IMG/VR virus record: IMGVR_UViG_3300032245_001860 | Coordinates: 251,853-315,852 of that record | Length of the DNA: 64,000 nucleotides | Direction: 5' to 3' (one strand) | Shown here: in pieces, positions 19,997 to 58,238 of the stretch | Layout: each line of letters opens with the position of its first letter | Numbering within the stretch: the first letter of the stretch is position 1 | Program-made: the position numbers and the translations under genes | The notes under the pieces: model-generated | Seen by the model: only the letters and a program-made list of their open reading frames with translations | Told to the model about the DNA's origin: nothing | Databases searched by the model: none

Positions 19997-19998
19997 TT

Positions 19999-25200: not shown

Positions 25201-26924
25201 TTGAATCAACACTTACATGGGATGCAGCTACCAATACTCTTACTTCTGGCAAGTTCAGCGGATTGGCATCTGGTACTGCTGCAACATTTACAAACTTCTA
25301 CGGAACACTTAATGGTAGCATGACAGGTACAGCTACCACTTCACAAAATGTAAATATAGTAACTACCAACACTGGTACATTCTATCCATTATTTACAAGT
25401 TCTTCAACCACTGCATCCGGCGTTGCGGTATCTATAGATGGTACTGATATTTCCTACAATGCAGCTACTAACGTACTTACAGCTGGACAATTTAGTGGAT
25501 TAGCTACTGGTACTGCAGCTACGTTTACAAATATTTATGGCACTCTCACAGGTAATGTCACTGGTACTTCTACAACTTCCCAAAATGTAAATATAGTAAC
25601 TGCTGCTACTGGTACATTCTACCCATTGTTTACAAGCGCATCAACAACAGCTTCTGGTGTTGCTGTGTCTATCGATGGTACTGATGTTTCCTACAACTTT
25701 GCTACCAATACATTTACTGCAGGTACTTTCTCTGGAAACTTATCTGCTACTGCAGCAACTGCTACTAACTTCTTTGGAACATTTAATGGAAGTTTAGCAG
25801 GATCAGCTACTACATCCCAAAATGTAAATATTGTCACTACAAACACTGGTACTTTCTATCCGTTGTTTACAAGTGCATCTACCACTGCATCTGGTGTAGC
25901 TGTATCTATTGATGGTACTGATATTTCCTATAATGCAGCAACCAACGTTCTTACAGCTGGTCAATTTAGTGGATTACATACAGGTACTGCGTTCACAGCT
26001 ACTACATCTTTCTACGGACCATTGGCAGGTACTGCAACAACAGCACAAAATGTATTTGTAACTAACCAAACAACTGGTACCTTCTACCCAACCTTGTCTG
26101 TATCTTCTGCTACAGCAAATGGTATAGCCCTTGGAGTAGATGCTAACCTTTCATTTGATGCAGCTACTAATGTACTTACTGCTGGTCAGTTCAGTGGTTT
26201 AGCTACAGGAACTGCTGCAACATTTACTAATATTTATGGAACATTGGTAGGTACAGCAACAAGTGCAGCTAACTTGAATGTTGTAGCTGCTGCATCTGCT
26301 GGTGCACATTACCTTCTTATGTCACCAACAGCATCAGGTTCTGGTATTGCAGTATCTACTGATGCACAATTATCTTACGTTCCAAGTACAGATACTCTTA
26401 CAGTTTCAAATATCAACAATACAACTGTTACTGCAGCTGCTGATTTATCAGCAGGAACATATTTGACAATCAAAACTACTTCTGGTGATGACAACTCAAC
26501 TACAGACTTCTTTATCAGAGGTATAACATCTGGATCTGTATCCAAGTTCTCTGTTGATGCAAATGGTAACTTGAGAGCTACAACCAAAAGCTTTGATATT
26601 GAGCACCCAACTAAGCCAGGCATGAGACTTGTATATGGTGTTCTTGAAGGCCCAGAGCATGGCGTATATCATAGAGGTACTGTTGAAGGTAAGGGTGAAT
26701 TAAAGGTTATGCTCCCAGAATATTGGAGCAAGCTTGTTTGCCCAGATTATTCAGTCCAACTTACTCCATGGGGCAACTATAGTGTTCATATCGTTGAAAA
26801 GTCAACAGAATACTTTACAATTAAGCTTAATGGCAATGCTATAGCAAGAGCTATTAAGAATATCAAGGTTGACTATATAGTACATGGTTCGAGATTGGAT
26901 GCACCATTAGAAACAGAACAATAA
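22257..26924 (+). CDS. Repeat-rich tail-fibre protein (1555 aa)
   Basis: About 14 repeats of ~75-80 aa (TTxQNVxxVTxxTGTFYP...); KSFDIEHP/LEGPE C-terminal domain. Confidence 0.85.
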   Translation: MANEPENFADKVINSLIKQSKAVDLTAEEVAAQSADPVPSGDFVAYGAPSGGGTGPGAGGNKDIVIIPGYTGTAATSVSQINFYWSAPNTPDATGVDNNIRATIYNFATNPGSGVTRSVLAFGGYDGANQYKPTPTYGGGTGITSKIFIDPFLGKIDTDFIGFNSTGVASTTDVGTMSYDTTQNRIRVGTGAGSAKTVAYTDDVSSVAGLATTAQNVNIVTTNTGTFYPLFTSSSTTASGAAVSIDGTDISYNAATNVLTAGQFSGLHTGAAATFTNIYGPLTGTATTAQNVFVTNQTTGTFYPALSVSSATANGIALGVDANLSFDAATNVLTAGQFSGLATGAAATFTNIYGALTGIATTAGLATTSQNVNIVTAATGTFYPLFTSASTTASGVAVSIDGTDVSYNFATNTFTAGTFSGNLSATAATATNFFGTLTGNVTGTATTAQNVNVVSGATGTFYPLFTSASATASGVAVSINSTNISYNFATNTLTAGTFSGNLSATAATATNFYGTLTGNVTGTATTSQNVYVTAQTTGTFYPTFSVSSSTANGIALGVDAQLSFDAATNTLTSGKFDGLHSGSAATFTNIYGTLTGNVTGTATTALNLSLQSTSQNASHLVPFTLNSATSGSALSTNAGFSYNPNTGVLTVGTVTGTISGIASTSASALVAAAASNSTHAVIFSTPTTSTGQAGVALSSSSNITYNPSGNGTFSLGSGQATINGLTLGATSNTITTSSGNLTLNASGGTVVIAANLNVQGTATYIDSTTQTITDPVIVLGSGAGGTHTNVTDTVDRGVEFRRFSGSAITGFFGQSNASGRFTFIPNANVTAANTYTGSVGVIEANLTGTAVTATNFFGPLVGNAASATTAGLATTAQNLNIVATTTGTLYPLFASVSTTASGVAVSVDGTDISYNAATNTLTAGQFSGLHTGTAATFTNIYGPLTGTATTAQNAYVTAQTTGTYYPVFTNTSSTTNGVVLSVESTLTWDAATNTLTSGKFSGLASGTAATFTNFYGTLNGSMTGTATTSQNVNIVTTNTGTFYPLFTSSSTTASGVAVSIDGTDISYNAATNVLTAGQFSGLATGTAATFTNIYGTLTGNVTGTSTTSQNVNIVTAATGTFYPLFTSASTTASGVAVSIDGTDVSYNFATNTFTAGTFSGNLSATAATATNFFGTFNGSLAGSATTSQNVNIVTTNTGTFYPLFTSASTTASGVAVSIDGTDISYNAATNVLTAGQFSGLHTGTAFTATTSFYGPLAGTATTAQNVFVTNQTTGTFYPTLSVSSATANGIALGVDANLSFDAATNVLTAGQFSGLATGTAATFTNIYGTLVGTATSAANLNVVAAASAGAHYLLMSPTASGSGIAVSTDAQLSYVPSTDTLTVSNINNTTVTAAADLSAGTYLTIKTTSGDDNSTTDFFIRGITSGSVSKFSVDANGNLRATTKSFDIEHPTKPGMRLVYGVLEGPEHGVYHRGTVEGKGELKVMLPEYWSKLVCPDYSVQLTPWGNYSVHIVEKSTEYFTIKLNGNAIARAIKNIKVDYIVHGSRLDAPLETEQ
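22888..26410 (+). repeat. Intragenic ~225-240 bp tandem repeats (~14 units, interrupted by one central domain; boundaries approximate)
   Basis: Protein units nearly identical; DNA units differ mainly at synonymous sites. Confidence 0.85.
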
Positions 26925-30584: not shown

Positions 30585-31316
30585 ATGGGTCACTATTTTA
30601 ACCCCAATATTCCAAAAGAAAATTTTCATTGGGCAGTTGATGCAGCAAATATTCGTTCTTATAATGGAACTGGAACTGTCTGGTTTGATGTTGTTGATGC
30701 TAACAATTTAACTTTGACTAATACTCCAACATTCTCATCTTTAGGAGCAACTTCTAATTTTGCTTTCAATGGCTCAACGCAATATGCAGTAAATTCTTCT
30801 TTGATTAGTCCAGCTTTAATTCAAGGACCAATTACTGTCAATGTAATTTTTTCTCCAAATACTCTTACTGGCACCCAAAATGTATTTTCTTTATTTGACA
30901 ATGTAAACAGGGCATTGCAAATTGGTTACAACGGAACAACAGGAGCTGTTTGGAAGTTTGGCGGAACATCATTAGTAACTTACAATTATGCTGGTGTTGG
31001 AACAGTATGGCATGTTACATACACATGTGATGGATCTAATAATTCCAAAGTTTATGTAAATGGTCAATTAAATAACTCTGGTGTTGTCGCTACTGATACA
31101 GGTACACCAGTTTATTACACTGTTGGTACTTATGGCGCTGGTGTAGGCCAGTTTTTTAATGGCAAAGTATATTATGCTTCTATACATAAAAAAGTATTTA
31201 CAGATAGAGAAGTGGCTTCTATGTGGCATGCGCTAAGAAGAAGATATGGTTATGCAGGAATTGGTATTACGCCTGTTGGTGATGCTGTCGTTGGCGGACT
31301 CCAAGGAGGCCAATAA
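30585..31316 (+). CDS. LamG-like protein (second array, copy 1)
   Basis: DAANIRSY, WHVTYT...VYVNG. Confidence 0.8.
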   Translation: MGHYFNPNIPKENFHWAVDAANIRSYNGTGTVWFDVVDANNLTLTNTPTFSSLGATSNFAFNGSTQYAVNSSLISPALIQGPITVNVIFSPNTLTGTQNVFSLFDNVNRALQIGYNGTTGAVWKFGGTSLVTYNYAGVGTVWHVTYTCDGSNNSKVYVNGQLNNSGVVATDTGTPVYYTVGTYGAGVGQFFNGKVYYASIHKKVFTDREVASMWHALRRRYGYAGIGITPVGDAVVGGLQGGQ

Positions 31317-31984
31317 TGGGTGGTGGTGTTGGTCCAGTAGGACAAGCATTAGAAAATGTTGTTGTGAGAATTGATGCTGTTAACGCCAATTCATATTCAG
31401 GATCGGGAACAACTATTAACTCTTTACTTAATTCACAAACATTAAGCTCAAGTGGTGTGACTTTCATATCGGCAAAAGGCGAAAGCGTGTTTGTTTTTGG
31501 TGGCTCAGGATATGTTACATCATCTAATAATACTGGAGTATCAGGAACTCAAAACAAAACCATGGCAGCATGGGTTAGATTTGGAACTAAAGGCACTCAA
31601 GGAAGTATGTCAACAGGTGCAAATGGTGCAGGTACAGGGATGGCATTGGCAACTTCAAGCAGTGTCATATTGTTAGGTTATGGCAATTCTGGCACATTAA
31701 CTACATATTCTTATAATGCTCATCAATGGTATTACTTGGTATATACAAGTAGCTTAGTTTCTGGCTCAACCCATAATATTCAGTTGTATGTAAATGGTGG
31801 TTTAGCTCATTCTGCATTAGTTCCAAATATCAACTTGACAAATAATTCTCTACGAATTGGTTGTGACAATAGTGGTTTTGGCATGAGTGGTTTCATCTCA
31901 AGAGCAAATTTTTACAATAAAAGTTTATCGCCAAGAGAAATACAAAAGAACTATCAAAATTATAAAAATAGGTTTGGATTATAA
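31316..31984 (+). CDS. LamG-like protein (second array, copy 2)
   Basis: WYYLVYT...LYVNG, YNKSLSPREI. Confidence 0.8.
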   Translation: MGGGVGPVGQALENVVVRIDAVNANSYSGSGTTINSLLNSQTLSSSGVTFISAKGESVFVFGGSGYVTSSNNTGVSGTQNKTMAAWVRFGTKGTQGSMSTGANGAGTGMALATSSSVILLGYGNSGTLTTYSYNAHQWYYLVYTSSLVSGSTHNIQLYVNGGLAHSALVPNINLTNNSLRIGCDNSGFGMSGFISRANFYNKSLSPREIQKNYQNYKNRFGL

Positions 31985-38556: not shown

Positions 38557-39098
38557 TGAATAACTATATAATCTTTTATCCAAAAGATATTGACAATAAT
38601 GACGAACCAAAAGAAACTGTTTTATGGGAAGTAAAATATCACTTGCATAGCAGTATGATAGATTTGCCTGATTATTTGTTAAGTTTATTGGAAGCAGATC
38701 AAAAACAAGCATATCCTATTAGTAAATGGCACTACGAATTTGCTAATTTAGGTATGCAGTTAATTTATGACTACGTGTATGCAAAAGAATATGCATATTT
38801 TTTAGATAACATTCCATTTTTTACTGCAACATTGTCAGCTTTGGATTTAAATAGATTCAACAACCAGATAGTGGTCAAACAAAAAGTTGGAAAAAAGCTT
38901 CTCAAAGAAATGAAGCTTAGAAACCAAGGAGTTATGCATCCTGAAAAGTTTCACAAAAAAATGATTGAATTAACAGATATATCAGATGAAAAATTCTTGA
39001 TACATGAAGAAATATGTGACACTTTATTGAATTTAGAAAATTTATGTGAAAAATGTGTGCAGTACGAAAGTCTGATTGAATGGAAATCTATATGTTAG
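38556..39098 (+). CDS. Hypothetical protein
   Basis: TAATG-coupled 180-aa ORF. Confidence 0.65.
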   Translation: MNNYIIFYPKDIDNNDEPKETVLWEVKYHLHSSMIDLPDYLLSLLEADQKQAYPISKWHYEFANLGMQLIYDYVYAKEYAYFLDNIPFFTATLSALDLNRFNNQIVVKQKVGKKLLKEMKLRNQGVMHPEKFHKKMIELTDISDEKFLIHEEICDTLLNLENLCEKCVQYESLIEWKSIC

Positions 39099-39109
39099 AG
39101 GTGATTTAA

Positions 39110-39562
39110 ATGAGTTGGTATAGATTAGCACAGCAACCAGACAATTGGTCTAATATCTTAAAAGGCAATCAGCCAGGTACAGCATCGAACCCAAAAGGAA
39201 TTCTTGTGAGTTATGCTGATTATCAAAAATTAAAATCTTTTGGTACTGGTAGTGGACCTATTAGTGTTTTAGATAAAGATACAAATCAATATGTAACTGT
39301 TATACATGGTGGCTTAACTCCTGACAATAAATTTGGTTTTGCAGATGGCAAGGGTGGATTTGTTTTTCCTAATGAAGAAGATGACTGGGCTACTAAATTA
39401 GGCGTAAATCCATCAAACTTCATAGTTTCTTGTTATGAAGGGTCTGCAAATGCTGGAGACTTTAAAGCTGCTACAAACTACCAAGGCAAACTTGAAATGT
39501 CAATGCCTCAGACAGTAACAGACACTACTCAAGATGTTAGAATTAACGTTTCAGGTGCATAA
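39110..39562 (+). CDS. Hypothetical protein (MSWYRLAQ start)
   Basis: GAGGTG RBS; contains HGG and VSCY motifs. Confidence 0.7.
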   Translation: MSWYRLAQQPDNWSNILKGNQPGTASNPKGILVSYADYQKLKSFGTGSGPISVLDKDTNQYVTVIHGGLTPDNKFGFADGKGGFVFPNEEDDWATKLGVNPSNFIVSCYEGSANAGDFKAATNYQGKLEMSMPQTVTDTTQDVRINVSGA

Positions 39563-39582
39563 AATACCTGTACAATTCTAAA

Positions 39583-40203
39583 ATGATTTCTTTATGTATT
39601 ACTCATCGAGTTGACGAGGATATATCTTGGGTTGAAGATATTTATGGTGATTTATTAATTTATAATAAAGGAGACGAATGGGATCTTCCATATCCTTGTC
39701 ATGAGTCTCCCAAGATACCTAATGAAGTTGATACTTTTTTAAGGGGCATTATTGAAGCTTATGATATTATGCCAAATTATAGATTTGTTTACCTTCTAAG
39801 ACCTAATTGCAGACACTTTGATGAAGATGTTACATCTTATATAAGCATAAATCAATACAATCAAGTTAATGATAATGAGATAGTTCCACTTGCTGATAAA
39901 TTTTTTGATTTCAATTTAGATCAAGCTAAAAAAACTCTTAATGAGAATCAAATATTAGTATTAGATTCTGTATTAGATATTATGAGTAAGTTAGGGATTA
40001 ATTTGAATGATAAGACCTATTCATGCTCATATGGTTCTCAGTATTTTTTTAGTAGCCAGTTTGTAATCAATAAACCCAAAGAATGGTGGATTGCTGTGCA
40101 TAGTATAGCTAATCAAATATATGAAAGTTTTGGAAATGATGTTTCTTATATATTTGAAATTTTGTGGCCAATGATTCTAAGACATTCTTTAATTCAAGAA
40201 TAA
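39583..40203 (+). CDS. DUF3431-like protein, divergent copy
   Basis: IYNKG, GSQY, KPKEWW, FEILWP present; GRE and QGNPFDH absent. Confidence 0.7.
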   Translation: MISLCITHRVDEDISWVEDIYGDLLIYNKGDEWDLPYPCHESPKIPNEVDTFLRGIIEAYDIMPNYRFVYLLRPNCRHFDEDVTSYISINQYNQVNDNEIVPLADKFFDFNLDQAKKTLNENQILVLDSVLDIMSKLGINLNDKTYSCSYGSQYFFSSQFVINKPKEWWIAVHSIANQIYESFGNDVSYIFEILWPMILRHSLIQE

Positions 40204-40214
40204 TGTGAGTAATT

Positions 40215-40919
40215 ATGAATAATATTTTTGTTCCAAATAATTATATAAAATTAAGTTCTATAAAAGTTTCTAAAGACATAGAAGAAGCTTACAAGGAAAA
40301 TAAAGGTTTTGAAGTTAAGTTAGAATTTAATGATTTACCATATGGTGAAAATGCCTTGTCTAAATCAATAGATGAAGAAACTATGAATCTACACCATGAC
40401 AAACATCATAAGAAATATTTTGATAATTTAATGGAAGCCCTGTCAGATCAAAACATAGACAATTTGAATGTGAATGATGTATTGTCTAATCTTGAAAAAT
40501 ATCCCAAGTCAATAAGAGAAAAGATTAGAAATAATGGTGGTGGTCACTTTAACCATGAGTTTTTTTGGAATCTAATGTCTCCAACACCTAAAACAAAACC
40601 TGAAGGTAAATTACTTCAAATGATTGAGAATCAATTTCAATCATTTGAAAATTTTAAAGAAGAATTTATTCAAACTGGCTTAGATAGATTCGGATCAGGC
40701 TGGGTATGGCTTTGCGTAAACAATGGAAAATTAAAATTGTCATCTATGCCAAATCAAGATAATCCAATAATTGAGAAATGCGGAGTGCCTTTGGTTGGAT
40801 GTGATGTTTGGGAACATGCATATTACTTAAAATATAAGAATGACAGAGAGGCATACTTAAAAGCCTGGTTTGATGTTTTAAACTGGGATTTTCCTGAAAA
40901 AATTATATCAAAATTGTAA
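40215..40919 (+). CDS. sodA: Fe/Mn superoxide dismutase, probably Mn-type
   Basis: HHDKHH, NNGGGHFNH, FGSGWVWL, NQD, DVWEHAYY. Confidence 0.95.
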   Translation: MNNIFVPNNYIKLSSIKVSKDIEEAYKENKGFEVKLEFNDLPYGENALSKSIDEETMNLHHDKHHKKYFDNLMEALSDQNIDNLNVNDVLSNLEKYPKSIREKIRNNGGGHFNHEFFWNLMSPTPKTKPEGKLLQMIENQFQSFENFKEEFIQTGLDRFGSGWVWLCVNNGKLKLSSMPNQDNPIIEKCGVPLVGCDVWEHAYYLKYKNDREAYLKAWFDVLNWDFPEKIISKL

Positions 40920-40937
40920 ATTTGTATAATTTTTTTT

Positions 40938-41600
40938 ATGAAAGACAGATTGGTTGTAATTGCAAGATATAATGAAAATTTAGATTGGTTAAAAAATCTA
41001 AATAATCCTTTTATGGTCTACAATAAAGGCCAAGAATTTCCATATGAAATAATTAGAAAAGACATTCCTAATAAGGGTAGAGAAGCAGAGACATATATTA
41101 GATCAATCATTGAAAATTATTCTGTGCTGAGTCAATATAAATATATGGTTTTCTTGCAAGGAAATCCATTTGATCATTGCCAGGATTTATACAACAAAAT
41201 AAATTCATATGATAATGAAAATACTTTTGATTACTTATCTGAATTAAATGGCGAAGTGCAATTTGATAAAATTTTATACTTAAGAGATCATTCTGTTTCT
41301 TTAATTGATTGTTTATTGAATCAAAGTTATGTAAATCAATCAGGTGCAGTAAAAACACTTTTATTGTTAAATCTAATCGGTATCAAATTACAATCTTGTC
41401 AATGGAGTTATGCATGTGGTGCTCAATATATAGTTCCAACCAAAATAATTCTAAATAAATCTATAGAATGGTGGATGCATTTTTATAGAATTTTTCAATG
41501 CTATTCTACTTCAGCCCCTAATGACTTTGCTTACATATTGGAATTGACTTGGCCGATTATATGGAATTTTTCTGACAATACAAAGGAAGAATCATATTAA
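40938..41600 (+). CDS. DUF3431-like putative glycosyltransferase
   Basis: VIARYNE, YNKG, NKGREAETY, FLQGNPFDH, GAQYIV, LELTWP. Confidence 0.8.
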   Translation: MKDRLVVIARYNENLDWLKNLNNPFMVYNKGQEFPYEIIRKDIPNKGREAETYIRSIIENYSVLSQYKYMVFLQGNPFDHCQDLYNKINSYDNENTFDYLSELNGEVQFDKILYLRDHSVSLIDCLLNQSYVNQSGAVKTLLLLNLIGIKLQSCQWSYACGAQYIVPTKIILNKSIEWWMHFYRIFQCYSTSAPNDFAYILELTWPIIWNFSDNTKEESY

Positions 41601-41643
41601 TGCAAATAATAAGTATATAAGAGATTTTCGGAGATCAAAAAAA

Positions 41644-42018
41644 ATGAATTTTGTTACTAATTTACTTACAATGCATAATCAATTCAAAGTTTATCATTGG
41701 CAAACACAAAGAAAAGTCGGAAGTTTTGCTCAACATAATGCTTTTGGCACAGCATATGATGATTTAACTGATCACATTGATGATTTTATTGAGATATATC
41801 AAGGTAAACGTGGTGCAATAATTGGTAAAAATGGCTTTACAATTAATCTACAAAATCTTGATGATAATCCTGTTGCTTTTGTTGATGAATTCATTAGCTA
41901 TTTAACTCAACATGTAACAGAAGCGCTTGATCCTGTTGCTGACACTGATTTATTAAATATTAGAGATGAAATGCTTGGTATTTTGAACCAGACAAAGTAC
42001 CGTTTAAATATGAAGTAG
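41644..42018 (+). CDS. Dps/ferritin-like four-helix protein (DUF5856-like)
   Basis: HWQT...AQHNAFGTAYDDL..HIDDFIE; LLNIRDEM. Confidence 0.75.
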   Translation: MNFVTNLLTMHNQFKVYHWQTQRKVGSFAQHNAFGTAYDDLTDHIDDFIEIYQGKRGAIIGKNGFTINLQNLDDNPVAFVDEFISYLTQHVTEALDPVADTDLLNIRDEMLGILNQTKYRLNMK

Positions 42019-42393
42019 ATGAATCAACTTAATGAAAAAATTGCCATCATTTTTACTAAATGTTTTGGCAATATGTTTACATTCTGGGCATTTTGTGGCT
42101 GGGCATTTTTACCATTGATTCCAGTTTTATCTAATTACAAAGAAACAATTTTATACATAAGCAGCGGGTTTATACAACTCGCTGCTCTTCCTTTAATAAT
42201 GGTTGGTCAAGAAGTTTTAGGTCGTGATTCTGAAAAAAGATCTTTAAAAGACCATGAAATGATACAAACTCAATTTTATAGAATGGAAGATGCAATGGAT
42301 AAATTAGGCTTGATATTAGAAGAAATAAGAGAATTGCATTTACATACACATAAAATGCTCAAGAAAGATAATGATGTCCCAGAAGACTTATAA
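42019..42393 (+). CDS. DUF1003-like membrane protein
   Basis: Two hydrophobic segments; FIQLAALPLIMVGQ. Confidence 0.6.
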   Translation: MNQLNEKIAIIFTKCFGNMFTFWAFCGWAFLPLIPVLSNYKETILYISSGFIQLAALPLIMVGQEVLGRDSEKRSLKDHEMIQTQFYRMEDAMDKLGLILEEIRELHLHTHKMLKKDNDVPEDL

Positions 42394-42616
42394 TAGTTAT
42401 TATGATTCTGATGGTGTAAAAGCAATGGTCGCTAAAAAATTAGCAACTTTAGAACTTTCCAATGGTGAGATGAAAAAAAGCTTAGAGTTTTCTCTCAATC
42501 TTGATACAGAGCAATTAAAAAATATATATAAAAACCTGTCCAAAAATCAGCAAAAAACCAAATTTGGACAGGCTATAAAAATGATCATAGAAATCAAAGA
42601 AGAGTTTTATTTATAA
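42371..42616 (+). CDS. Hypothetical protein
   Basis: 81-aa ORF continuing the operon. Confidence 0.5.
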   Translation: MMSQKTYNSYYDSDGVKAMVAKKLATLELSNGEMKKSLEFSLNLDTEQLKNIYKNLSKNQQKTKFGQAIKMIIEIKEEFYL

Positions 42617-42987
42617 CCACAACCCCCGCAAGTGTCGTACTCTTCTCCTTCTATAGAGAAACTTTTGTTACATCCACAAGTTTTTGCAGCGTTTGGATTT
42701 TCTACCTTAAATCCAGATTGCATTCCATTTTCTTGATAATCTATAACACATCCATTGACATATTTTGCTGAACTATATTCTACTGCAATTTTTATATCTT
42801 TATCATAAACTATAATGTCATCGATTTCAGGCTCACCTTCTGCTAAAGCAAGTCCATATTGTAATCCTGAACATCCTCCACCAGACACATAAAAAGCAAG
42901 ATAAGCATCAGAAACAGATTGATCTTCTATAGTGTTCAAAATAATTTTAGCTGCAGTTTCAGTTAAAGAAATATTTAAATCATTCAT
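42607..42987 (-). CDS. iscA: A-type Fe-S cluster carrier (HesB/IscA/ErpA)
   Basis: GGGCSGLQY, GFKVENPNA, CGCNKSF. Confidence 0.92.
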   Translation of the reverse strand: MNDLNISLTETAAKIILNTIEDQSVSDAYLAFYVSGGGCSGLQYGLALAEGEPEIDDIIVYDKDIKIAVEYSSAKYVNGCVIDYQENGMQSGFKVENPNAAKTCGCNKSFSIEGEEYDTCGGCGYK

Positions 42988-42989
42988 AT

Positions 42990-43865
42990 TTACCTCAAAA
43001 TTTCAAACCTTGTTGCATGTATTACTGGTCTCACTAAAACTAAATCAAGTGCTGTGTCAACTAAAACTTGAGCAGTAATATCAGTTTCAGGCTCTACAGA
43101 ATCAGTATGCACTATTAAACCCTTTTTATGTTCTCCAACCACAATCTTTTGAGCAAAATATAACAGTGAAGCTTCTTTACTCTCAGCAATCTGAAATTTT
43201 TTCAACCAAGAGCTGACCCAATCTTGCTCAACAATGCTATTATTCTTTTTAACAACCCAGTTTTCTGGGTGTAATAATGCTAAATCATATCTTGTCGAAA
43301 GTGATTTTACATCTTCCATGTCATCAGCATTTGTAGCTTTTATGCAAAGTTCACCATCAAAGTTATCAATTAAAGTCTTTGTAACTTTTAATGGTTCTTC
43401 AATTTTAACATGGTAATCATGAAGCATTTCATTGAGTAATGTTTCAGCTTTGCCATAATTTTCATTTTGCAAAGCATCATCAAGCTCATAATGAATATCT
43501 AAAGTGGAAGCTAATTTCTTTAGATAATCTATAACTTCTTCTTCAGAAAGTAAAATTATATCTGTATCTTGAGTTCTTGCTAATTTTGGTTCTATAATTC
43601 TAAATTTGAATAAATCTTCAATGATAATTTTATAATAGCCCCAAGCTTGATGGTTGATATTTAGGAAACATTCATGTATGAGATTTCCATTTGACCCAAA
43701 AACATCTGTTGGTATAATTTGCATAAATGAATTTTGTTCTGGATCTACTAAGCCAAGAGAAGTTGTTTCAGTTCCTAATCTCATAGCACATCGAACAATA
43801 TCTTGATTATCTTCAACCCAAATGGCAATTCCTGCTTCTAAGGCATATTCTGGTGTTTTTTCCAT
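42990..43865 (-). CDS. Hypothetical protein
   Basis: 291-aa ORF with TATAAT 6 nt upstream of ATG. Confidence 0.7.
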   Translation of the reverse strand: MEKTPEYALEAGIAIWVEDNQDIVRCAMRLGTETTSLGLVDPEQNSFMQIIPTDVFGSNGNLIHECFLNINHQAWGYYKIIIEDLFKFRIIEPKLARTQDTDIILLSEEEVIDYLKKLASTLDIHYELDDALQNENYGKAETLLNEMLHDYHVKIEEPLKVTKTLIDNFDGELCIKATNADDMEDVKSLSTRYDLALLHPENWVVKKNNSIVEQDWVSSWLKKFQIAESKEASLLYFAQKIVVGEHKKGLIVHTDSVEPETDITAQVLVDTALDLVLVRPVIHATRFEILR

Positions 43866-43891
43866 AAAACTATTATACGTTAGAACTCATT

Positions 43892-44611
43892 TTAAATATC
43901 TTTGTGTTCAATGTGCAATTCTTCTATTTTTTTAAGAAATTTGTCTATGGTTCTGATAGATGGGTTTTCAATGGTAATCTCATGTAGATTGGGTTTGTTA
44001 GCTTCTTTATTTAAAACTATAATACTATCGTAATAAACAATCGATTCTAAATTTTTAGTGAAATAAGTATGATCAATTTCTATAGAGTTTCGGGAATTTA
44101 ATTGATCAATAATATTTTTAGTATGTTCAATGAAGCTTTTTGGATTTTTATAACCACCATCATCATAAAATTTAAAATAAGATGTATGGCAATCCTCTAC
44201 AAGATATATTCCATTATCAGATAGTAAATGTTCAAAAGCAAAATTTAAAGTTTGGATTTGATGATTGTTTTTATGACTTCCATCATCAAGAATTACATCA
44301 AATTTGCCATATTTAGCAGCAATTTTTTCAAGAAAATCAATGTCTGATTGATCTCCTATTTCAATTTTGATATTATTTTTTTCAAGATTTTTGCACTCAG
44401 GTTCAATATCTATTCCAAGAATTTGTGAGTTTTCTCCAAAGCAATAAGCCCACATATCTAAAGACCCGCCTTTCCAAACACCAATTTCAAGAAATTTGAT
44501 ATCTTTGTCTACAAATTTTCCAAAGTGTTTATTGTAGATATCTAAGTAATGGGTCCACTTATGAATGCTTCTATGAGTTCTGTTGTAAAAAAAATCTTCA
44601 AACTTATTCAT
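43892..44611 (-). CDS. Class I SAM-dependent methyltransferase of the type found in glycan clusters (start moved to MNKFED)
   Basis: HKWxHY, LEIGVWKGGSL, GIDI, GDQSD, DVILDDGSH, YLVED; TATAAT 7 nt before this ATG. Confidence 0.85.
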   Translation of the reverse strand: MNKFEDFFYNRTHRSIHKWTHYLDIYNKHFGKFVDKDIKFLEIGVWKGGSLDMWAYCFGENSQILGIDIEPECKNLEKNNIKIEIGDQSDIDFLEKIAAKYGKFDVILDDGSHKNNHQIQTLNFAFEHLLSDNGIYLVEDCHTSYFKFYDDGGYKNPKSFIEHTKNIIDQLNSRNSIEIDHTYFTKNLESIVYYDSIIVLNKEANKPNLHEITIENPSIRTIDKFLKKIEELHIEHKDI

Positions 44612-44632
44612 GAAAATAATTATACTGTTAAA

Positions 44633-44664
44633 TGAAAAGGGACAGGATGAGATCAATCCTGTCC
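44633..44664 (-). terminator. Intrinsic terminator ending the ncRNA
   Basis: GGACAGGAT-tgatctc-ATCCTGTCC followed by CTTTTCATTT on the minus strand. Confidence 0.8.
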
Positions 44665-45395
44665 AAGCAGTTTCGTTTACAGGATTACGATACTCGCAAC
44701 TTATATCTTGCCTGTTGATCCACTTAAAAAAGTCAAACTGCACAACCGCCTTATTATACTGGTGGCATTTCCAGTCTTATATTAGGTCTTTTACTGAAAT
44801 TACATAATAAATCGTTAAAATAATAGGTAACAATTTATTTTTTTTACTTGTTGCAAAAGTGTATTTTCATAAGCCAGGTTGTTTATTCCTAATACGAGAT
44901 ATGTCTATTTCTTGGGTAGATAAAGCCGTCAAATCTTCATCTTAACACGCCAGTTGCGCTTGCTTTCGTCATAAGCTATACCCGCTCTCTACAGAAGTGT
45001 GCATATCTTGTTGCTCCTGAATAAGGAATACAACTCACTTCAATGTCTACTGCATCACGAAGCAAGTAGACCTGATTTCAAGATTCTATTAGTTTTGAAA
45101 TTTATAGAAACTAATAAACCTTTAATCATGCTATACAGCCCTTGACCGTGACTTCTCGGACCATATAACTACCTTTATTTTCTTAGACTTTAATGCCGCT
45201 GATTGATACATATATTCAGCGTTTATATGTATGTTTTCATCTCCATCATAGTTCCAGGTTTCGGGCCTGAAACTCACAGAAAACAGGCTTGCTTGAACGA
45301 CCATTACTGGCGGGAGCAGTAGAGAATTGCTTTATCCCTTTTTTATATCTCACGATGTCAAGCCACCGAAATTGTTATTCAATTGTTAAAATACA
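44633..45395 (-). ncRNA. Large (~760 nt) structured ncRNA, GOLLD/ROOL-like size class; family not confirmed
   Basis: No credible ORF; consensus promoter upstream and terminator downstream; many helices. Confidence 0.75.
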
Positions 45396-45401
45396 AATAT
45401 T

Positions 45402-45429
45402 ATTATATTGTTATTGATATTTTTGTCAA
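45402..45429 (-). promoter_or_regulatory. Consensus sigma70 promoter driving the ncRNA
   Basis: TTGACA-N16-TATAAT on the minus strand. Confidence 0.85.
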
Positions 45430-46145
45430 TCACCTTTTGAAGGGTCATATTCAAAAATCAATGGCCATAAATTTTCAAATGTTCCTGACATTCTGATACC
45501 TGTCCCAATTGGATTATTAGCAATCACAATCAATTTATATAAACATGCCCACCATTCGTAAGGCTTATTTATAATCTTTGAAACTGGTACAATATGTTGA
45601 GCTCCAGAACCCCATTGATACGATCTTCCTTTATATGGGATATCCATCATTTTGCAAACAAAAGAAACTAAAGCGAGATCAGTTGCTACAATTTCAGATT
45701 CTTCAATATGATCGTCATAAATTAATGGGCATGTTATTTTTTCTTCTGGGCAAAATATTTTTCTGATTAAAATATTATAAAAACCATTTATGTAAAAATC
45801 ATCATCATTTGCAAATTCAAAAGGATTACAATGTGTGGTTAGAGGCATATAAGTGTCTTTATTAGCATTATTTATTATATCAATTGTATTTGCACAATGG
45901 TCAAATGGGTGTCCTTGTAAAAAAATTACAGTTTCTAATAAATGCAATTGATCATAATTTTCTAAAATACCACGAAGAAATGCTTCTGCTTCTCGCCCAA
46001 TATTAGGAGAATCTATTTTATGAATTTCAGGCCAAAGCCAGTCCTCTCCATGATTATATATAATATAATATGTCTTGAGATTTTTTATCCATTGAATGTC
46101 TTCATCATATCTGCATACTATAGTTAGCTTTTTGTAGTCTTGCAT
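45426..46145 (-). CDS. DUF3431-like putative glycosyltransferase
   Basis: VCRYDE, NIGREAEAF, FLQGHPFDH, GAQHIVP, FENLWP. Confidence 0.8.
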   Translation of the reverse strand: MQDYKKLTIVCRYDEDIQWIKNLKTYYIIYNHGEDWLWPEIHKIDSPNIGREAEAFLRGILENYDQLHLLETVIFLQGHPFDHCANTIDIINNANKDTYMPLTTHCNPFEFANDDDFYINGFYNILIRKIFCPEEKITCPLIYDDHIEESEIVATDLALVSFVCKMMDIPYKGRSYQWGSGAQHIVPVSKIINKPYEWWACLYKLIVIANNPIGTGIRMSGTFENLWPLIFEYDPSKGD

Positions 46146-46191
46146 ATATTTTTTATAAAACAATTGGCATTTGTATTTTGGATATATGAAA

Positions 46192-46605
46192 TTAATTTGC
46201 TTTCCATTTATCCGGAATATATATTTTTACAATATCTGATGACCACTTTTTTCCTTCATCACCACCATATAATCGCCATTCCCAGTAAGTAGGATTTTCA
46301 TCATTTTTAGAGTGGTTGAATCGTTTTTCAAAAGTATATTTATGAATCTTCAATACATCTTTTAATTCAAGGTATGATCTATTTGATAAGTCTCTTGCTA
46401 TATCATAATCTTTTTGAGACCCAAAATTAATCTTTCCTAAGCGTTTTTTGTAAGCTTCTTCTGCTATTTTTCTTATTTCATAAGGAATAAAAATTTTCTT
46501 ATCCATTATTGATTCTTTTGAAGCAAATTTGTTAAAAACTGTATCAGATAATTTAAATAGCTGTTTTGAATCAAGAATTTTGCAGAGGTTTATAATTTTG
46601 TTCAT
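46192..46605 (-). CDS. Hypothetical phage protein with leader motif and W.L[WY]GGD.G..W domain
   Basis: N-terminal IINLCKILDSKQLFKLSD; C-terminal WEWRLYGGDEGKKW. Confidence 0.7.
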   Translation of the reverse strand: MNKIINLCKILDSKQLFKLSDTVFNKFASKESIMDKKIFIPYEIRKIAEEAYKKRLGKINFGSQKDYDIARDLSNRSYLELKDVLKIHKYTFEKRFNHSKNDENPTYWEWRLYGGDEGKKWSSDIVKIYIPDKWKAN

Positions 46606-46653
46606 ACAGTATATATATATAATAAAATAAAAAAATACCTTCGGAGGTACAAA

Positions 46654-47286
46654 ATGCCGATAACACTTTCAGATGCTCTCATATTTACTCTTGCTTGGGA
46701 AGGAGGATTTACTAATCACCCTCTTGACCCTGGTGGAGCTACAAATTTTGGTATCATTCAAACAAGATATGATGAATATCGCAAATTCAAAAAACTGAAA
46801 ACCCAAACAGTAAAGCTTATTACCAAAGAAGAATACACAGAAATTTATGATAAATATTATTGGGATCCAGTAAGAGCTCAATATTTGTTGGGACCTTTAG
46901 GGCTTGCATTATTTGATACAGCAGTAAATTTGGGTGTAGGTGGAGCTCTAAGCAGATTGCAGTCTTCCATGAAATTGCCTGTCACTGGTAAATGGACCCA
47001 AAACATAAGTGACAAAATACATGATGCTAATCAATTGGATATAGCAATCAATATTTGTAAGCTAAGAATAGCAAAAAGATATGCAAGGGTCAAACAAAGA
47101 CCAGATCAAGTTGTCTTCTTAAAAGGATGGCTCAATAGAGATAATGCTTTATTGAGAAAAGTCAAATCTTTAGGTGGAATTTCTGTTTTGTCTATTGAGC
47201 CAGGTTACGATTTTGATTTAGAAGAGATTACTAATGAGTTTAATACAGATCTTCTGAAGGAACTGGAAGCTTTTGATTTGGATTAG
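46654..47286 (+). CDS. Endolysin, glycoside hydrolase family 108 with peptidoglycan-binding tail
   Basis: EGGFTNHPLDPGGATNFGI, FDTAVNLG, FLKGWLNR. Confidence 0.9.
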   Translation: MPITLSDALIFTLAWEGGFTNHPLDPGGATNFGIIQTRYDEYRKFKKLKTQTVKLITKEEYTEIYDKYYWDPVRAQYLLGPLGLALFDTAVNLGVGGALSRLQSSMKLPVTGKWTQNISDKIHDANQLDIAINICKLRIAKRYARVKQRPDQVVFLKGWLNRDNALLRKVKSLGGISVLSIEPGYDFDLEEITNEFNTDLLKELEAFDLD

Positions 47287-47974
47287 GTTGGTGATTCCAA
47301 ATAGATAGCCACACTCTTTCGCAATATGCAGCTATTTCATCACCTGGATTTATAGACTTCCAATCTTTAATCAATGTGTAAAATTCAGTCCACCATTCAA
47401 AATTTTTAGATTTGATATATGATGTGGGCACTATATATTGCGCTCCAGCAGAATAGGTAATTTCCTTAGAAGATAAATCTAATCCTAACATTTGGGCAAA
47501 AAATACAGAAGTGCTAATTTCTAAACCTCTGTCATCATTTAAGTCTATGTCTCCAGACAATTTTGTAAATGTTGCTGAAGGGGCAAATTGCTTTCTGAAA
47601 AGTTTACATATTGTTGCAGCTTCAAAATTAAAGTACGCTCTGTCACTTGGAAGTTTGTAAGTGACCATTGAATTTGCTAAAAATACAATTTCATTTGAAT
47701 TGTATTCGTTTATGGATTCGACTGGGTCATCATCATGGTCAAAAGGATTCCCTTGAATGAAAATAACACAATCATAATCATCCAGCATTTCATAGCATTC
47801 GACAATAGCTCTTGCGTAAGTTTCACACTCTCTGCCATAATTTTCAATATCAACTCTTGGAATATCTTCCCAAGGCCAATTTTCGCCTTTATTATAGATT
47901 AATATATCTCCATCTAATTCTTTAGACCATTCAATGTCCTCATTGTATCTTGCTATAATTGTTAATTTTTTCAT
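47240..47974 (-). CDS. DUF3431-like putative glycosyltransferase
   Basis: IARYNE, NYGRECETY, FIQGNPFDH, GAQYIVP, ERVW; ATGA overlap start. Confidence 0.8.
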   Translation of the reverse strand: MKKLTIIARYNEDIEWSKELDGDILIYNKGENWPWEDIPRVDIENYGRECETYARAIVECYEMLDDYDCVIFIQGNPFDHDDDPVESINEYNSNEIVFLANSMVTYKLPSDRAYFNFEAATICKLFRKQFAPSATFTKLSGDIDLNDDRGLEISTSVFFAQMLGLDLSSKEITYSAGAQYIVPTSYIKSKNFEWWTEFYTLIKDWKSINPGDEIAAYCERVWLSIWNHQPNPNQKLPVPSEDLY

Positions 47975-48684
47975 AAGTCTGAGTGTTGCCAAATTAATGG
48001 CCAAATCCTTTCTAAAATATATGTCCAAGCAATTTCATTCTTTTCTTTGCACAAATAATAAAATAAGTAATGAAGATTTTTCCACCATTCTAATGATTTG
48101 TTGGTAATTAAAAACGAGGGAACTGTGTATTGTGCCCCAACAGCCCAATAATTATCTTTATCTTGATGATCTAATCCCAAGATTGTACACATTGTCACAT
48201 TGTCTAAAAACCAATTTTTATTTGGTTCTTGATTTGTCACAGTGTTAGTATTCAAATCTAATTTTTGATATTTAGGAATAAATTCTTCATTCAAGTGATC
48301 TAAGTTCAGCATGCAATTTATTATGGAAGGATGAATATTGAATATTCTTCTATTGTCATTGTAAATATCTCTATTAATTGAATTAGACAAAGCAAGTATT
48401 TCATTTTTTTCATTATTGTTGATCATTTGAATAATATCTGGGCAATGATCAAAAGGATTTCCTTGCACAAAAGATATCAAATCATAATCTTTGAAAACTT
48501 CATAAAATTCAATAACGGCTCTGACAAAAGTTTCACCTTCTCTGCCATAATTTTCAATGTTTATTCTGGGAATATTTTCATAAGGCCAATCATCACCTTT
48601 ATTATAAATAACAATATCTCCAGACAATTCTTTAGACCATTCAATGTTTTCATTGAATCTTGCAATAATTGTTAGCTTTTTCAT
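47971..48684 (-). CDS. DUF3431-like putative glycosyltransferase
   Basis: IARFNE, NYGREGETF, FVQGNPFDH, GAQY, LERIWP; ATGA overlap start. Confidence 0.8.
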   Translation of the reverse strand: MKKLTIIARFNENIEWSKELSGDIVIYNKGDDWPYENIPRINIENYGREGETFVRAVIEFYEVFKDYDLISFVQGNPFDHCPDIIQMINNNEKNEILALSNSINRDIYNDNRRIFNIHPSIINCMLNLDHLNEEFIPKYQKLDLNTNTVTNQEPNKNWFLDNVTMCTILGLDHQDKDNYWAVGAQYTVPSFLITNKSLEWWKNLHYLFYYLCKEKNEIAWTYILERIWPLIWQHSDL

Positions 48685-49394
48685 AAGTCTTTGTGATCCA
48701 AAATTAGAGGCCAAATACGTTCTAATGCATATGTCCAAGATTCAATTTGTTTATATTTGGAAATATATTCGAAAATCATATGCAAATTTTCCCACCATTG
48801 TTTACTTTTATACTTAATATTTTTTATTGGTACTATATATTGACCACCATTAGCCCATTCAACAATCTTATTTTGATAATCTATATCTAATATAGAGCAC
48901 AATCCCATGGTTTCTTCAAATAAAAAGAAATCTGTGTTTGATTGATTTCTACTTAATTCATTTGGATTGCAGTAATCAATCTTTGATTTGAATGACTTAT
49001 CTTCAATTTGAAGTAAAATATTTATGATTGAAAAATGTTTACCATTGATGAAGTCATCTGACGGGTATTGGTCTTTAGAAACAAAATCAGATATTTTTAC
49101 AATAGAGTTCTTGAATGAAAAATTTATAACTTTTTTGAAATCTTTGCAATGCTCTTGTGGATTACCTTGCAAAAAAACTACATTGTCATAATGGTCTAAA
49201 TTTTCATAAAATTCTATGATAGCCCTGACAAAAGTTTCACCTTCTCGGCCATAGTTTTCAGTATCTATTCTTGGTATATCTTTCCATGGCCAATCTGTGC
49301 CTTTATTATAGATGACAATATCTCCATCTAAATCTCTTGCCCATTTAATATCTTCATTATATCTGGCAACTATAATCAAGTTTTTGGGACTCAT
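48681..49394 (-). CDS. DUF3431-like putative glycosyltransferase
   Basis: VARYNE, NYGREGETF, FLQGNPQEH, GGQY, LERIWP. Confidence 0.8.
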   Translation of the reverse strand: MSPKNLIIVARYNEDIKWARDLDGDIVIYNKGTDWPWKDIPRIDTENYGREGETFVRAIIEFYENLDHYDNVVFLQGNPQEHCKDFKKVINFSFKNSIVKISDFVSKDQYPSDDFINGKHFSIINILLQIEDKSFKSKIDYCNPNELSRNQSNTDFFLFEETMGLCSILDIDYQNKIVEWANGGQYIVPIKNIKYKSKQWWENLHMIFEYISKYKQIESWTYALERIWPLILDHKDL

Positions 49395-49411
49395 GAAATT
49401 ATTTTACAAGA

Positions 49412-49437
49412 AAGGTGACTGTCAATTTATCTGTAAA
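49412..49437 (+). promoter_or_regulatory. Putative phage promoter WAGG-N16/17-TGTAA
   Basis: Same motif at 51903, 52261, 56682 (+) and 63239 (-). Confidence 0.5.
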
Positions 49438-49468
49438 TATATAAGTAACAGTACTCAGGAGTTTTATA

Positions 49469-50002
49469 ATGTCAGAAAAAAGAATTATATTATGCTCACA
49501 ATTGATTGAACAAGCTAATAGTTTTGATTCAAAAGGTGATCATGAAAAAGCAGATCAACTTACAAAAGTAGCCAAACAATTATCTAATAAAGAAATATCA
49601 GTTCGTGAAGCTCTGAATTTTGGAAGAATGTTAGGCGGTCTTACTGGTGGACTTGCTGGGTATGCTTTGGCTCCAATGTTTGCAAGACAAAAGGGTGGAT
49701 TGCAATATTCAATGCAAATTCTTCAAAAGAAATACCCACAATTATATACCCAACTATTACCTGAGTTTACAGCAATACAAAATATTGAAAATTCTATACA
49801 GCCAAGAAAAAATGCTCTTACTACAAAGGTAATGCAAGCAATTCAATCAGGTTCATATACAAACACACCTGTTGCAACTCCTCCTCCTGTACAAGCAACC
49901 ACAACTCCAGCTGCAACCACAACTCCTGCACCAGTAGCAGCTTCTGCTGTAAAAGTCAATCCAGTTGTCACTCCTGCTAATATTGCTGTAACAAAAGGTT
50001 AA
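49469..50002 (+). CDS. Leader-family hypothetical protein
   Basis: LIEQANSFDSKGDHEKADQL...VREA; Pro/Thr/Ala-rich tail. Confidence 0.75.
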   Translation: MSEKRIILCSQLIEQANSFDSKGDHEKADQLTKVAKQLSNKEISVREALNFGRMLGGLTGGLAGYALAPMFARQKGGLQYSMQILQKKYPQLYTQLLPEFTAIQNIENSIQPRKNALTTKVMQAIQSGSYTNTPVATPPPVQATTTPAATTTPAPVAASAVKVNPVVTPANIAVTKG

Positions 50003-57566: not shown

Positions 57567-58238
57567 ATGGAAACTATTTTTATTATTAAGAATTTTAAAA
57601 GAACAAAAGATTGTGTCTTGACTATTAAGAGTATTAGGCATTTTTGTGATAATGAAATACATATTCTACATTTATTTAATGAAAGTATTGACGAATACAA
57701 AACATCAGAACTTTCATATAATGAAGAATTAATGAGTATGGGTGTAATCCAATTTTTTGGTAAAACAAAGTATAATTGTGGTCCAGGTTGTTTAAGTCCA
57801 GTGAATGGTTTGTATTATTCTGAGGGATTGAATTATTGTTCTGAAATTTTTAAGGGTCAAAACAAAAAAGTAATATTTTTAGATGAAAATCATTTTTTCA
57901 CTACAGGTGAAACAATTAAATTTTTATTAGATAATGATTATGATTTTGCTTATGGAACTTGGGGCGATCCTACACTTAGTGGTGAAGATGAAAATACGTT
58001 GCCTAATTGCTCATTATTAGGTTTTAATTTTTTTAATTTAAAACATTTATTTCCTATCCAAGAAGTCATAATGTTTTGTGAACCTCTAATCAGTCAAGAA
58101 ATTCTTGCTAAAATCACAGACAAATCTCGTATTTATAAAATACCAACCAGAATAAGAGACAATTATTGTGGAGATGGTTTTTGGACTAATGATTATGATC
58201 AAATGTATGATGCTTTGCAAAAAAGTGGAATCGTATAA
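57567..58238 (+). CDS. Putative GT-A fold glycosyltransferase
   Basis: FKR..CVLTIKSI, GLNY, VIFLDENH (DxD-like position). Confidence 0.55.
   Translation: METIFIIKNFKRTKDCVLTIKSIRHFCDNEIHILHLFNESIDEYKTSELSYNEELMSMGVIQFFGKTKYNCGPGCLSPVNGLYYSEGLNYCSEIFKGQNKKVIFLDENHFFTTGETIKFLLDNDYDFAYGTWGDPTLSGEDENTLPNCSLLGFNFFNLKHLFPIQEVIMFCEPLISQEILAKITDKSRIYKIPTRIRDNYCGDGFWTNDYDQMYDALQKSGIV

Follow-up and report, generated by a model that had tools for sequence, protein, structure and literature searches.

Six DUF3431 paralogues of an uncultured jumbo phage: candidate glycosyltransferases with a genomic link to galactofuranose

What might a phage make with six diverged copies of a DUF3431 protein and a neighbouring methyltransferase? 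We addressed this question for the final 64 kb (positions 251853-315852, 64,000 nucleotides; hereafter the window) of a linear IMG/VR virus record of 315,852 bp (IMGVR_UViG_3300032245_001860), estimated to be 88% complete. Structural and tail-fibre matches, a match to a family-A-type DNA polymerase PHROG at the far end of the window, and the origin of related contigs from marine and other metagenomes identify the element as an uncultured jumbo tailed phage. We favour the explanation, with a probability of about 0.5, that the six proteins are soluble glycosyltransferases which together with the methyltransferase build a glycan containing galactofuranose (Galf). The strongest lead is the link of the family to uridine diphosphate (UDP)-galactofuranose, together with the phage's own gene for UDP-galactopyranose mutase (glf).

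Six diverged paralogues and their predicted fold

A sequence-only reading of the window had described six DUF3431-like copies, and all six open reading frames (ORFs), here called A to F, were found at those places (Table 1). They are homologous over their full length, with pairwise identities of 27-47%, and a hidden Markov model (HMM) built from them has exactly six matches in the 315,852-bp genome, the next match having an E value of 0.06. Copies B, C and D exceed the gathering cut-off of Pfam DUF3431 (PF11913; 25 bits), whereas A and F do not reach it and E went unmatched at E<=0.01. Membership nonetheless holds for all six, which form one clade with DUF3431 proteins, five of the six retaining the near-invariant residues.

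The motifs listed in the sequence-only reading proved to be those of the whole family. Among 80 family members, R9, Y10, E12, W16, Y27-N28-K29-G30, N45, G47-R48-E49 and T52 are invariant or at least 90% conserved, and Q74-G75-N76-P77-F78-D79-H80, G177, Q179 and E219-R220 are likewise invariant or nearly so. Essentially all of these residues are present in copies B-F; copy A lacks Y10, N45, G47, R48, Q74, G75, P77 and H80, a loss that the sequence-only reading had overlooked. The middle segment of 46-82 amino acids is as variable as had been described, with a mean pairwise identity of 17% compared with 46% over the first 92 residues and 33% over the last 62. No hydrophobic or membrane segment was found in any of the six proteins.

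Three of the genes form a tandem operon, F-E-D. The identical junction reported for them is the 13-mer GACTTATGAAAAA, which occurs exactly twice (47967-47979 and 48677-48689, both on the minus strand; 0.02 occurrences expected) and constitutes the ATGA stop/start overlap at both F/E and E/D, such that the three genes are translationally coupled; the start ATGs of E and D lie at 48684 and 47974. For copy C the ATG at 46145 is the probable start, the listed TTG at 46163 being less likely.

Table 1. Features of the phage, in window coordinates unless marked as genome coordinates.
Feature	Coordinates	Strand	Remarks
DUF3431 paralogue A	39583..40203	+	206 aa; most divergent copy; 8 near-invariant family residues missing; Pfam 18.5 bits
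DUF3431 paralogue B	40938..41600	+	220 aa; complete motif set; Pfam 38.6 bits
DUF3431 paralogue C	45426..46145	-	239 aa from ATG; Pfam 28.2 bits
DUF3431 paralogue D	47240..47974	-	244 aa; final gene of F-E-D operon; Pfam 32.6 bits
DUF3431 paralogue E	47971..48684	-	237 aa; ATGA overlaps with F (upstream) and D (downstream)
DUF3431 paralogue F	48681..49394	-	237 aa; opening gene of F-E-D operon; Pfam 20.0 bits
Sigma-70-like promoter	49398..49425	-	TTGACA-16-AATAAT, 11/12; directly upstream of F; consensus match only
S-adenosylmethionine-dependent methyltransferase (Methyltransf_24)	43892..44611	-	Pfam 27.6 bits (cut-off 26.3); phrog_21658, E 6e-19
Structured non-coding RNA	44632-45395	-	~765 nt; between DUF3431 C and methyltransferase
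RNA promoter	45429-45402	-	sigma-70, 12/12; sole such match in region
RNA intrinsic terminator	44664-44640	-	with compensatory changes
GT-A-fold protein unrelated to DUF3431	57567..58238	+	223 aa; invariant L105-D106-E107, DxD-like
Short-chain dehydrogenase/reductase (SDR) sugar epimerase/dehydratase	phage genome, about 51.8 kb		best match GalE, sub-threshold
Giant Ser/Thr-rich ORFs	first 36 kb (among them 1687-9009, 9876-14564 and 22257-26924)		557-2440 aa; 25-30% Ser+Thr, genome mean 15%
Tandem paralogues	first 36 kb		~230 aa; 'virion structural protein' PHROG matches and a weak tail-fibre match
Fe/Mn superoxide dismutase	40215-40919	+	
Ferritin-like DUF5856	41644-42018	+	
IscA/ErpA-type Fe-S assembly protein	42607-42987	-	
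GH108-type endolysin	46654-47286	+	inside DUF3431 cluster; 3' end overlaps 3' end of convergent D by 47 nt
glf (UDP-galactopyranose mutase)	genome 122962-124080		TIGR00031 338.6 bits, equivalog cut-off 303.75
Two tandem GT2-like genes; third GT2-like gene (144937-145806)	genome G000:C1 68759-70161 and 141427-146816		outside window

Such an expansion is exceptional, since 62 of 64 non-redundant viral loci (10 kb each side of the match) hold a single DUF3431 copy and the other two a tandem pair. The six copies group with those of two contigs syntenic with the phage, L095 and L096, in a single clade (SH-aLRT 95) of a 144-domain DUF3431 tree. L095 has three copies and L096 at least three; both carry a single gene at the place of F-E-D, and neither has the methyltransferase. 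A recent tandem duplication can be ruled out: D (P0002-P0011), E (P0016) and F (P0018, P0015, L095_3817 and L096_8053) each have their own orthologues elsewhere. Copy A has an orthologue at the syntenic place in L095 (56-61% identity), from which we conclude on sequence grounds that it is maintained despite its lost residues, and copy B has one in L096 (45-48% identity). Five of the six are thus diverged, maintained genes and not recent duplicates. As orthologues of D, E and F occur on other short contigs, the expansion appears to be old within the phage group, with copy number differing among relatives.

An AlphaFold2 model of D, built with an 80-sequence alignment, reached a mean predicted local distance difference test score (pLDDT) of 90.2 and a predicted template-modelling score (pTM) of 0.88, with less confidence in the variable middle (73-88). 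Comparison with GT-A structures by Foldseek, which the sequence-only reading had suggested, gave weak PDB matches (E about 1e-3, TM-score 0.3-0.37), all of them to GT-A or nucleotidyltransferase folds (CMP-Kdo synthetase, GlfT2, GT6 enzymes). Among Swiss-Prot models, which matched the same folds, the best were STELLO1/2, a polyprenyl-phosphate mannosyltransferase and WxcX (TM-score 0.5). AlphaFold DB clusters with eukaryotic, bacterial and giant-virus DUF3431 proteins, some fused to other domains, were matched at E values of 1e-12 to 1e-6, and structural neighbours in the Atlas were GT6, GT2, RgpF and GlfT2-like proteins. The top VIA matches are glycosyltransferases, with GlfT2 among both the Foldseek and the VIA matches. 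The DUF3431 family is therefore predicted to have a GT-A-type (nucleotide-diphospho-sugar transferase) fold with a Rossmann-like nucleotide-sugar-binding domain.

The family is large and mostly viral. D has 138 relatives in the protein collection searched, including the same protein on a 370-kb contig. IMG/VR holds 365 confirmed DUF3431 loci, many in giant-virus metagenome-assembled genomes (MAGs) and many on large phage contigs, and the Atlas clusters belong mostly to Uroviricota and Nucleocytoviricota. Among 185,579 prokaryotic species genomes there are 64 loci, scattered across many phyla, and the eukaryotic DUF3431 is a membrane-anchored protein. Copy B had no tblastn match, and positions 39000-50000 of the window no megablast match, among 50,697 GenBank phage records. 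In viruses DUF3431 is fused in frame to Caps_synth/Gly_transf_sug, Glyco_tranf_2_4, HtrL_YibB, Methyltransf_24 and Epimerase/GDP_Man_Dehyd domains.

Genomic links to galactofuranose supply and to methylation

UDP-galactopyranose mutase is by far the commonest neighbour of DUF3431, a connection that the sequence-only reading had not drawn. Using a glf profile, we found the gene within 10 kb of DUF3431 in 49 of 144 loci (26/80 viral, 23/64 cellular), abutting or overlapping DUF3431 in about half of these and in either orientation; by our own estimate, chance alone would bring an arbitrary gene of a 4-Mb genome to within this distance of its one or two glf copies in ~0.5-1% of cases. The cellular pairs come from Saccharimonadota, Bacteroidota, Balneolota, Cyanobacteriota (Prochlorococcus/Synechococcus), Pseudomonadota (Acetobacteraceae, Sphaerotilaceae) and several Verrucomicrobiota. 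Whole viral records give a similar picture: six of the seven with DUF3431 have glf, compared with 89 of the 50,697 GenBank phage records, and in all six DUF3431 lies no more than 1 kb from glf, abutting it in four. As an internal control, these same six records contain 22 GT2-like matches, seven within 10 kb of glf and one abutting it. In the complete record G004, a DUF3431-methyltransferase fusion abuts glf and a single sub-threshold GT2-like match is present.

The link is concentrated in parts of the family. On the tree the glf label is clustered (20 changes, compared with 39 in shuffles), and the nearest outgroup of the six-copy clade (support 90) consists of four viral loci, all glf-linked. 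The phage itself has a glf above the equivalog cut-off, so that a supply of UDP-Galf is encoded in the genome and the family is coupled to it, though not universally. The Galf assignment would hold best for the sub-lineage containing the six, and across DUF3431 as a whole more than one donor is probably used.

The second recurrent partner is Methyltransf_24. The sequence-only reading had placed a glycan-type methyltransferase at 43892, and we identify it as a member of this family, albeit with a revised start: the ATG at 44611 is probably used instead of the listed GTG at 44743, because the first 44 codons from the GTG are the 3' end of a conserved RNA that is also present in relatives without the methyltransferase. 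Homologues of the phage enzyme abut DUF3431 in six viral loci, a more distant Methyltransf_24 lies between DUF3431 and glf in six further loci, and at locus L039 a DUF3431-Methyltransf_24 fusion is followed by glf. The enzyme is a probable glycan O-methyltransferase partner of the six. The claim of a diversified glycosyltransferase set is thus upheld as far as computation goes, by the GT-A-type model, the fusions and the neighbourhood of glf and Methyltransf_24.

Further sugar genes outside the window point to a larger glycan toolkit in the phage. They are three GT2-like genes and, at 141-147 kb of the genome and by eye only, sugar-activation-like genes resembling a cupin, a HAD-family protein and a GHMP-type kinase. 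The phage also has the SDR gene and the GT-A-like gene noticed earlier at 57567, which is confirmed as a second GT-A-fold protein; the DUF3431 family profile shows no significant similarity to it.

Proposed pathway and rival explanations

We suggest that the products of the six genes are small, soluble, single-domain DUF3431 enzymes that most likely act as glycosyltransferases. Among possible donors, UDP-Galf made with the phage's own glf would have the best support, at least where their common ancestor is concerned. The conserved N- and C-terminal parts (E12, YNKG, GRE, QGNPFDH, GAQY and E219) may constitute the nucleotide-sugar and catalytic site, while the hypervariable middle would bind the acceptor, each paralogue forming a different linkage or serving a different acceptor. 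The neighbouring Methyltransf_24 enzyme would then O-methylate the product, in an arrangement resembling the PBCV-1 protein A064R. Lacking any membrane segment, the six enzymes would work in the infected cell's cytoplasm, on an acceptor made by the phage. Our guess at that acceptor is the Ser/Thr-rich virion proteins of the same window, since cytoplasmic proteins are the simplest target for soluble enzymes and Ser/Thr-rich structural ORFs are at hand; the extreme composition claimed for these ORFs is borne out by the figures in Table 1. A more ambitious version is that DUF3431 is a new glycosyltransferase family (a candidate for CAZy) with Galf transfer as its core activity, found in tailed phages, giant viruses and scattered bacteria and membrane-anchored in fungi and algae, and that six specialised phage enzymes and the methyltransferase assemble a methylated Galf oligosaccharide on the Ser/Thr-rich fibres; we put this forward only tentatively.

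Several observations weigh against the assignment of the six as Galf transferases. The DxD motif is not conserved in the 80-member family alignment; by secondary-structure order in the model, the QGNPFDH loop, after strand 69-74, appears to follow the strand that bears DxD in canonical GT-A enzymes. None of the six proteins matched PF00535 (Pfam GT2), and hhalign gave probabilities below 5% against both the phage's own GT2 and an alignment of 10 viral GT2 proteins (enlarging the GT2 set from the loci with jackhmmer yielded 7 sequences only). Neither the six proteins nor the seven viral records matched PF14393 (DUF4422/GT111), and in the search of the latter the control genomes also gave no match; an Atlas feature match of 0.89 to a cluster with DUF4422 in 15% of its members is a lead only. 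A profile search of PDB sequences returned chance matches (E about 1), PHROGs has no family for any of the six, and NCBIfam none for D. A literature search for DUF3431, PF11913 and new Galf-transferase families found no functional study or enzyme assay, the fungal papers merely mentioning the domain, and we know of no CAZy family for DUF3431.

The genomic coupling also has its counterweights. GT2-type genes, which are possible users of UDP-Galf, occur in every glf-bearing viral record (6/6), and the idea that DUF3431 is the sole possible Galf transferase in such viruses was rejected for this reason. Dependence of the whole family on glf was likewise rejected, given that glf is present in 25 of 44 DUF3431-bearing cellular genomes (many of them incomplete MAGs; 4 of 14 control genomes have it) and that a large, mostly giant-virus clade is rarely linked to it. 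The phage's glf lies 170 kb from the six paralogues, and contigs L095 and L096 are too short to show whether glf is present or absent. The distance and the rarely linked clade would suit glycosyltransferases that use other donors, such as UDP-glucose or UDP-galactose or the deoxyhexoses of guanosine diphosphate (GDP) and deoxythymidine diphosphate (dTDP), the phage glf then feeding a different enzyme, for example of GT2 type. The 19 cellular genomes that lack glf, the fusions to GDP-mannose-dehydratase-like SDR domains, which suggest deoxy-sugar donors in some members, and the phage's own GT2-like and sugar genes at 68.7-70.2 kb and 141-147 kb all agree with this. We nevertheless consider it doubtful for the six, whose nearest outgroup is entirely glf-linked; moreover, DUF3431 is coupled to glf far more tightly than GT2 is in the same viral genomes, and in G004 it is the DUF3431-methyltransferase fusion, not the one sub-threshold GT2-like match, that abuts glf.

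Other rivals concern the acceptor or the reaction itself. Instead of modifying phage proteins, the enzymes might glycosylate the host envelope (lipopolysaccharide, capsule or teichoic-acid precursors), perhaps to exclude superinfecting phages or to mask receptors. Bacterial homologues do lie in chromosomal regions with glf, sometimes in several copies (L098, L103, L130), and enzymes of lipid-linked glycans (ArnC, GtrB, TarP/TarS and RgpF) are among the structural neighbours. The six proteins, however, have no membrane segment, no flippase or polyprenyl-phosphate transferase was recognised beside their genes, and giant viruses commonly carry the family as well, in some cases next to the major capsid protein gene, all of which makes a host target unlikely. 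Phage DNA with hydroxylated or hydroxymethylated pyrimidines is an even less probable acceptor. It has a precedent in Pootjesviridae, where phage glf has been proposed as the source of UDP-Galf used in DNA hypermodification (PMC13326640), and the possession of glf together with several soluble, cytoplasmic transferases, as is typical of oligosaccharide DNA modifications, would fit. Against it, no match to the thymidylate-synthase family (PF00303) or to TET/JBP (PF12851) was found at E<=1 in the phage record (88% complete by estimate), the DNA glycosyltransferases of the precedent resemble GT-B and not GT-A enzymes, and DUF3431 is widespread in bacteria and eukaryotes, being membrane-anchored in the latter. 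Least probable of all, in our judgement, is that the six are not glycosyltransferases but nucleotidyltransferases that activate sugar phosphates, or non-catalytic nucleotide-sugar-binding proteins. The missing DxD motif and the eight residues lost from copy A would agree with such a role; the glycosyltransferases among the top VIA matches, and fusion partners that are transferases and sugar-modifying enzymes, would not, and UDP-Galf, being derived from UDP-galactopyranose, requires a transferase and not a nucleotidyltransferase. The strand-1 motif IIARYNED also resembles, in our assumption, the 'PxYNE' start of GT2 enzymes more than the Gly-rich loop of nucleotidyltransferases, although the local alignment is not significant.

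The surrounding locus and the wider family

The stretch between copy C and the methyltransferase is, on the evidence of its conservation, an RNA gene. Five other metagenomic contigs share about 810 nt with it at 89-95% identity and a sixth at ~75%, compared with just 45-60% for the flanking proteins. The consensus fold has 228 pairs with 97% of cells paired, and 39 pairs show compensatory changes, compared with 5-9 in controls with slid partners. Folding is poorer for the opposite strand, and no codon periodicity is seen in the substitutions. The 3' 215 nt match the Rfam family GOLLD (RF02032) with 38.3 bits (E 1.9e-8 in a 901-nt search), far below its gathering threshold of 150; agreement is good only in the 3'-terminal helices of this alignment, from which two large parts of the model are missing. 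A diverged copy in L166 did not match GOLLD. Rfam at gathering thresholds and a tRNA scan found nothing in the window, nor did a batch Rfam search of related loci, and an exact-match scan of IMG/VR returned no further copy of the RNA. The gene probably specifies a large, divergent GOLLD-like RNA carried by marine jumbo phages.

Several other features of the window (GC 28-40%) were recorded. Redox and iron genes alternate with the DUF3431 copies, and they are kept in the syntenic region of related phage contigs, where thioredoxin is also encoded. The order DUF3431, GH108 gene, gene for a 137-aa protein, DUF3431 is kept in relatives. A second paralogue expansion comprises 11 head-to-tail ORFs with ~12 copies of a ~230-aa module (14564-21398 and 30585-31984, plus strand), of which two lie within the ORF at 18668-19996. 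The modules have a mutual identity of 23-39%, match phrog_8510/24074 ('virion structural protein') and are placed amid the Ser/Thr-rich giant ORFs. Elsewhere, DUF3431 relatives on the 648-kb contig L009 and on L008 lie beside genes for TFIIB-like, TatA/TatC, RCC1-repeat, sulfotransferase and Methyltransf_21 proteins; these contigs are probably giant viruses with glycan-modifying genes of their own.

How does DUF3431 compare with systems already described? In the model, it resembles GT-A enzymes of the GT2 family (SpsA, hyaluronan synthase, ArnC, TarP/TarS, GlfT2) in placing a Rossmann-like nucleotide-binding half before a variable acceptor half, and both have an acidic/aromatic motif right after strand 1 and a conserved loop after the equivalent of the DxD-strand. 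It differs in having no Pfam GT2 match or significant profile similarity, in carrying QGNPFDH instead of DxD, and in its much smaller size, a single domain of ~190-245 aa. GT111 (DUF4422; the N-terminal domain of Klebsiella WbbM, and Kingella PamA) offers the same route of inference, as a former DUF beside glf that is a galactofuranosyltransferase and founded a new CAZy family (PMC12269835), but the six proteins and the seven viral records have no PF14393 sequence match. Chlorovirus PBCV-1 glycosylates its capsid protein in the cytoplasm with virus-encoded enzymes, among them A064R, which combines two glycosyltransferases and a methyltransferase (PMC7019647). Soluble viral glycosyltransferases with a glycan methyltransferase are common to both cases, and DUF3431 too is found fused to Methyltransf_24 and to transferases; the enzyme families, sugars and host domain are different, and a virion glycan, established on a structural protein of PBCV-1, is a prediction for the phage. 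In Pootjesviridae, phage glf is proposed to feed DNA glycosylation by GT-B-like transferases (PMC13326640). These and T-even-like systems with glycosylated DNA share with the phage a glf and several glycosyltransferases, but they need a thymidylate-synthase-like hydroxylase or hydroxymethylase and GT-B-like transferases, neither of which was found in the phage record.

In summary, virus-encoded glycosylation, GT-A enzymes and the identification of a former DUF by glf as a Galf transferase (GT111) are already known. What appear to be new are the fold assigned to DUF3431, the tight coupling of the family to glf and Methyltransf_24 in both viruses and bacteria, and its expansion to six members in a jumbo phage.

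Galactofuranose is a sugar that mammals lack, whereas many bacteria, fungi and protozoa have walls and surface glycans in which it is essential or important; the enzymes of its synthesis and transfer are therefore under study as targets for drugs and diagnostics. To our knowledge, some known Galf linkages are still unaccounted for by known transferases. If our explanation is correct, a widespread DUF can be assayed directly for Galf transfer, and a single phage supplies six natural variants for comparison. DUF3431 would be a new enzyme family, and several hundred genes of viruses, bacteria and eukaryotes would gain a function. Virion or other virus-directed glycosylation would then be known from marine jumbo phages as well as from mycobacteriophages and giant viruses, which would affect how the jumbo phages appear to hosts and grazers.

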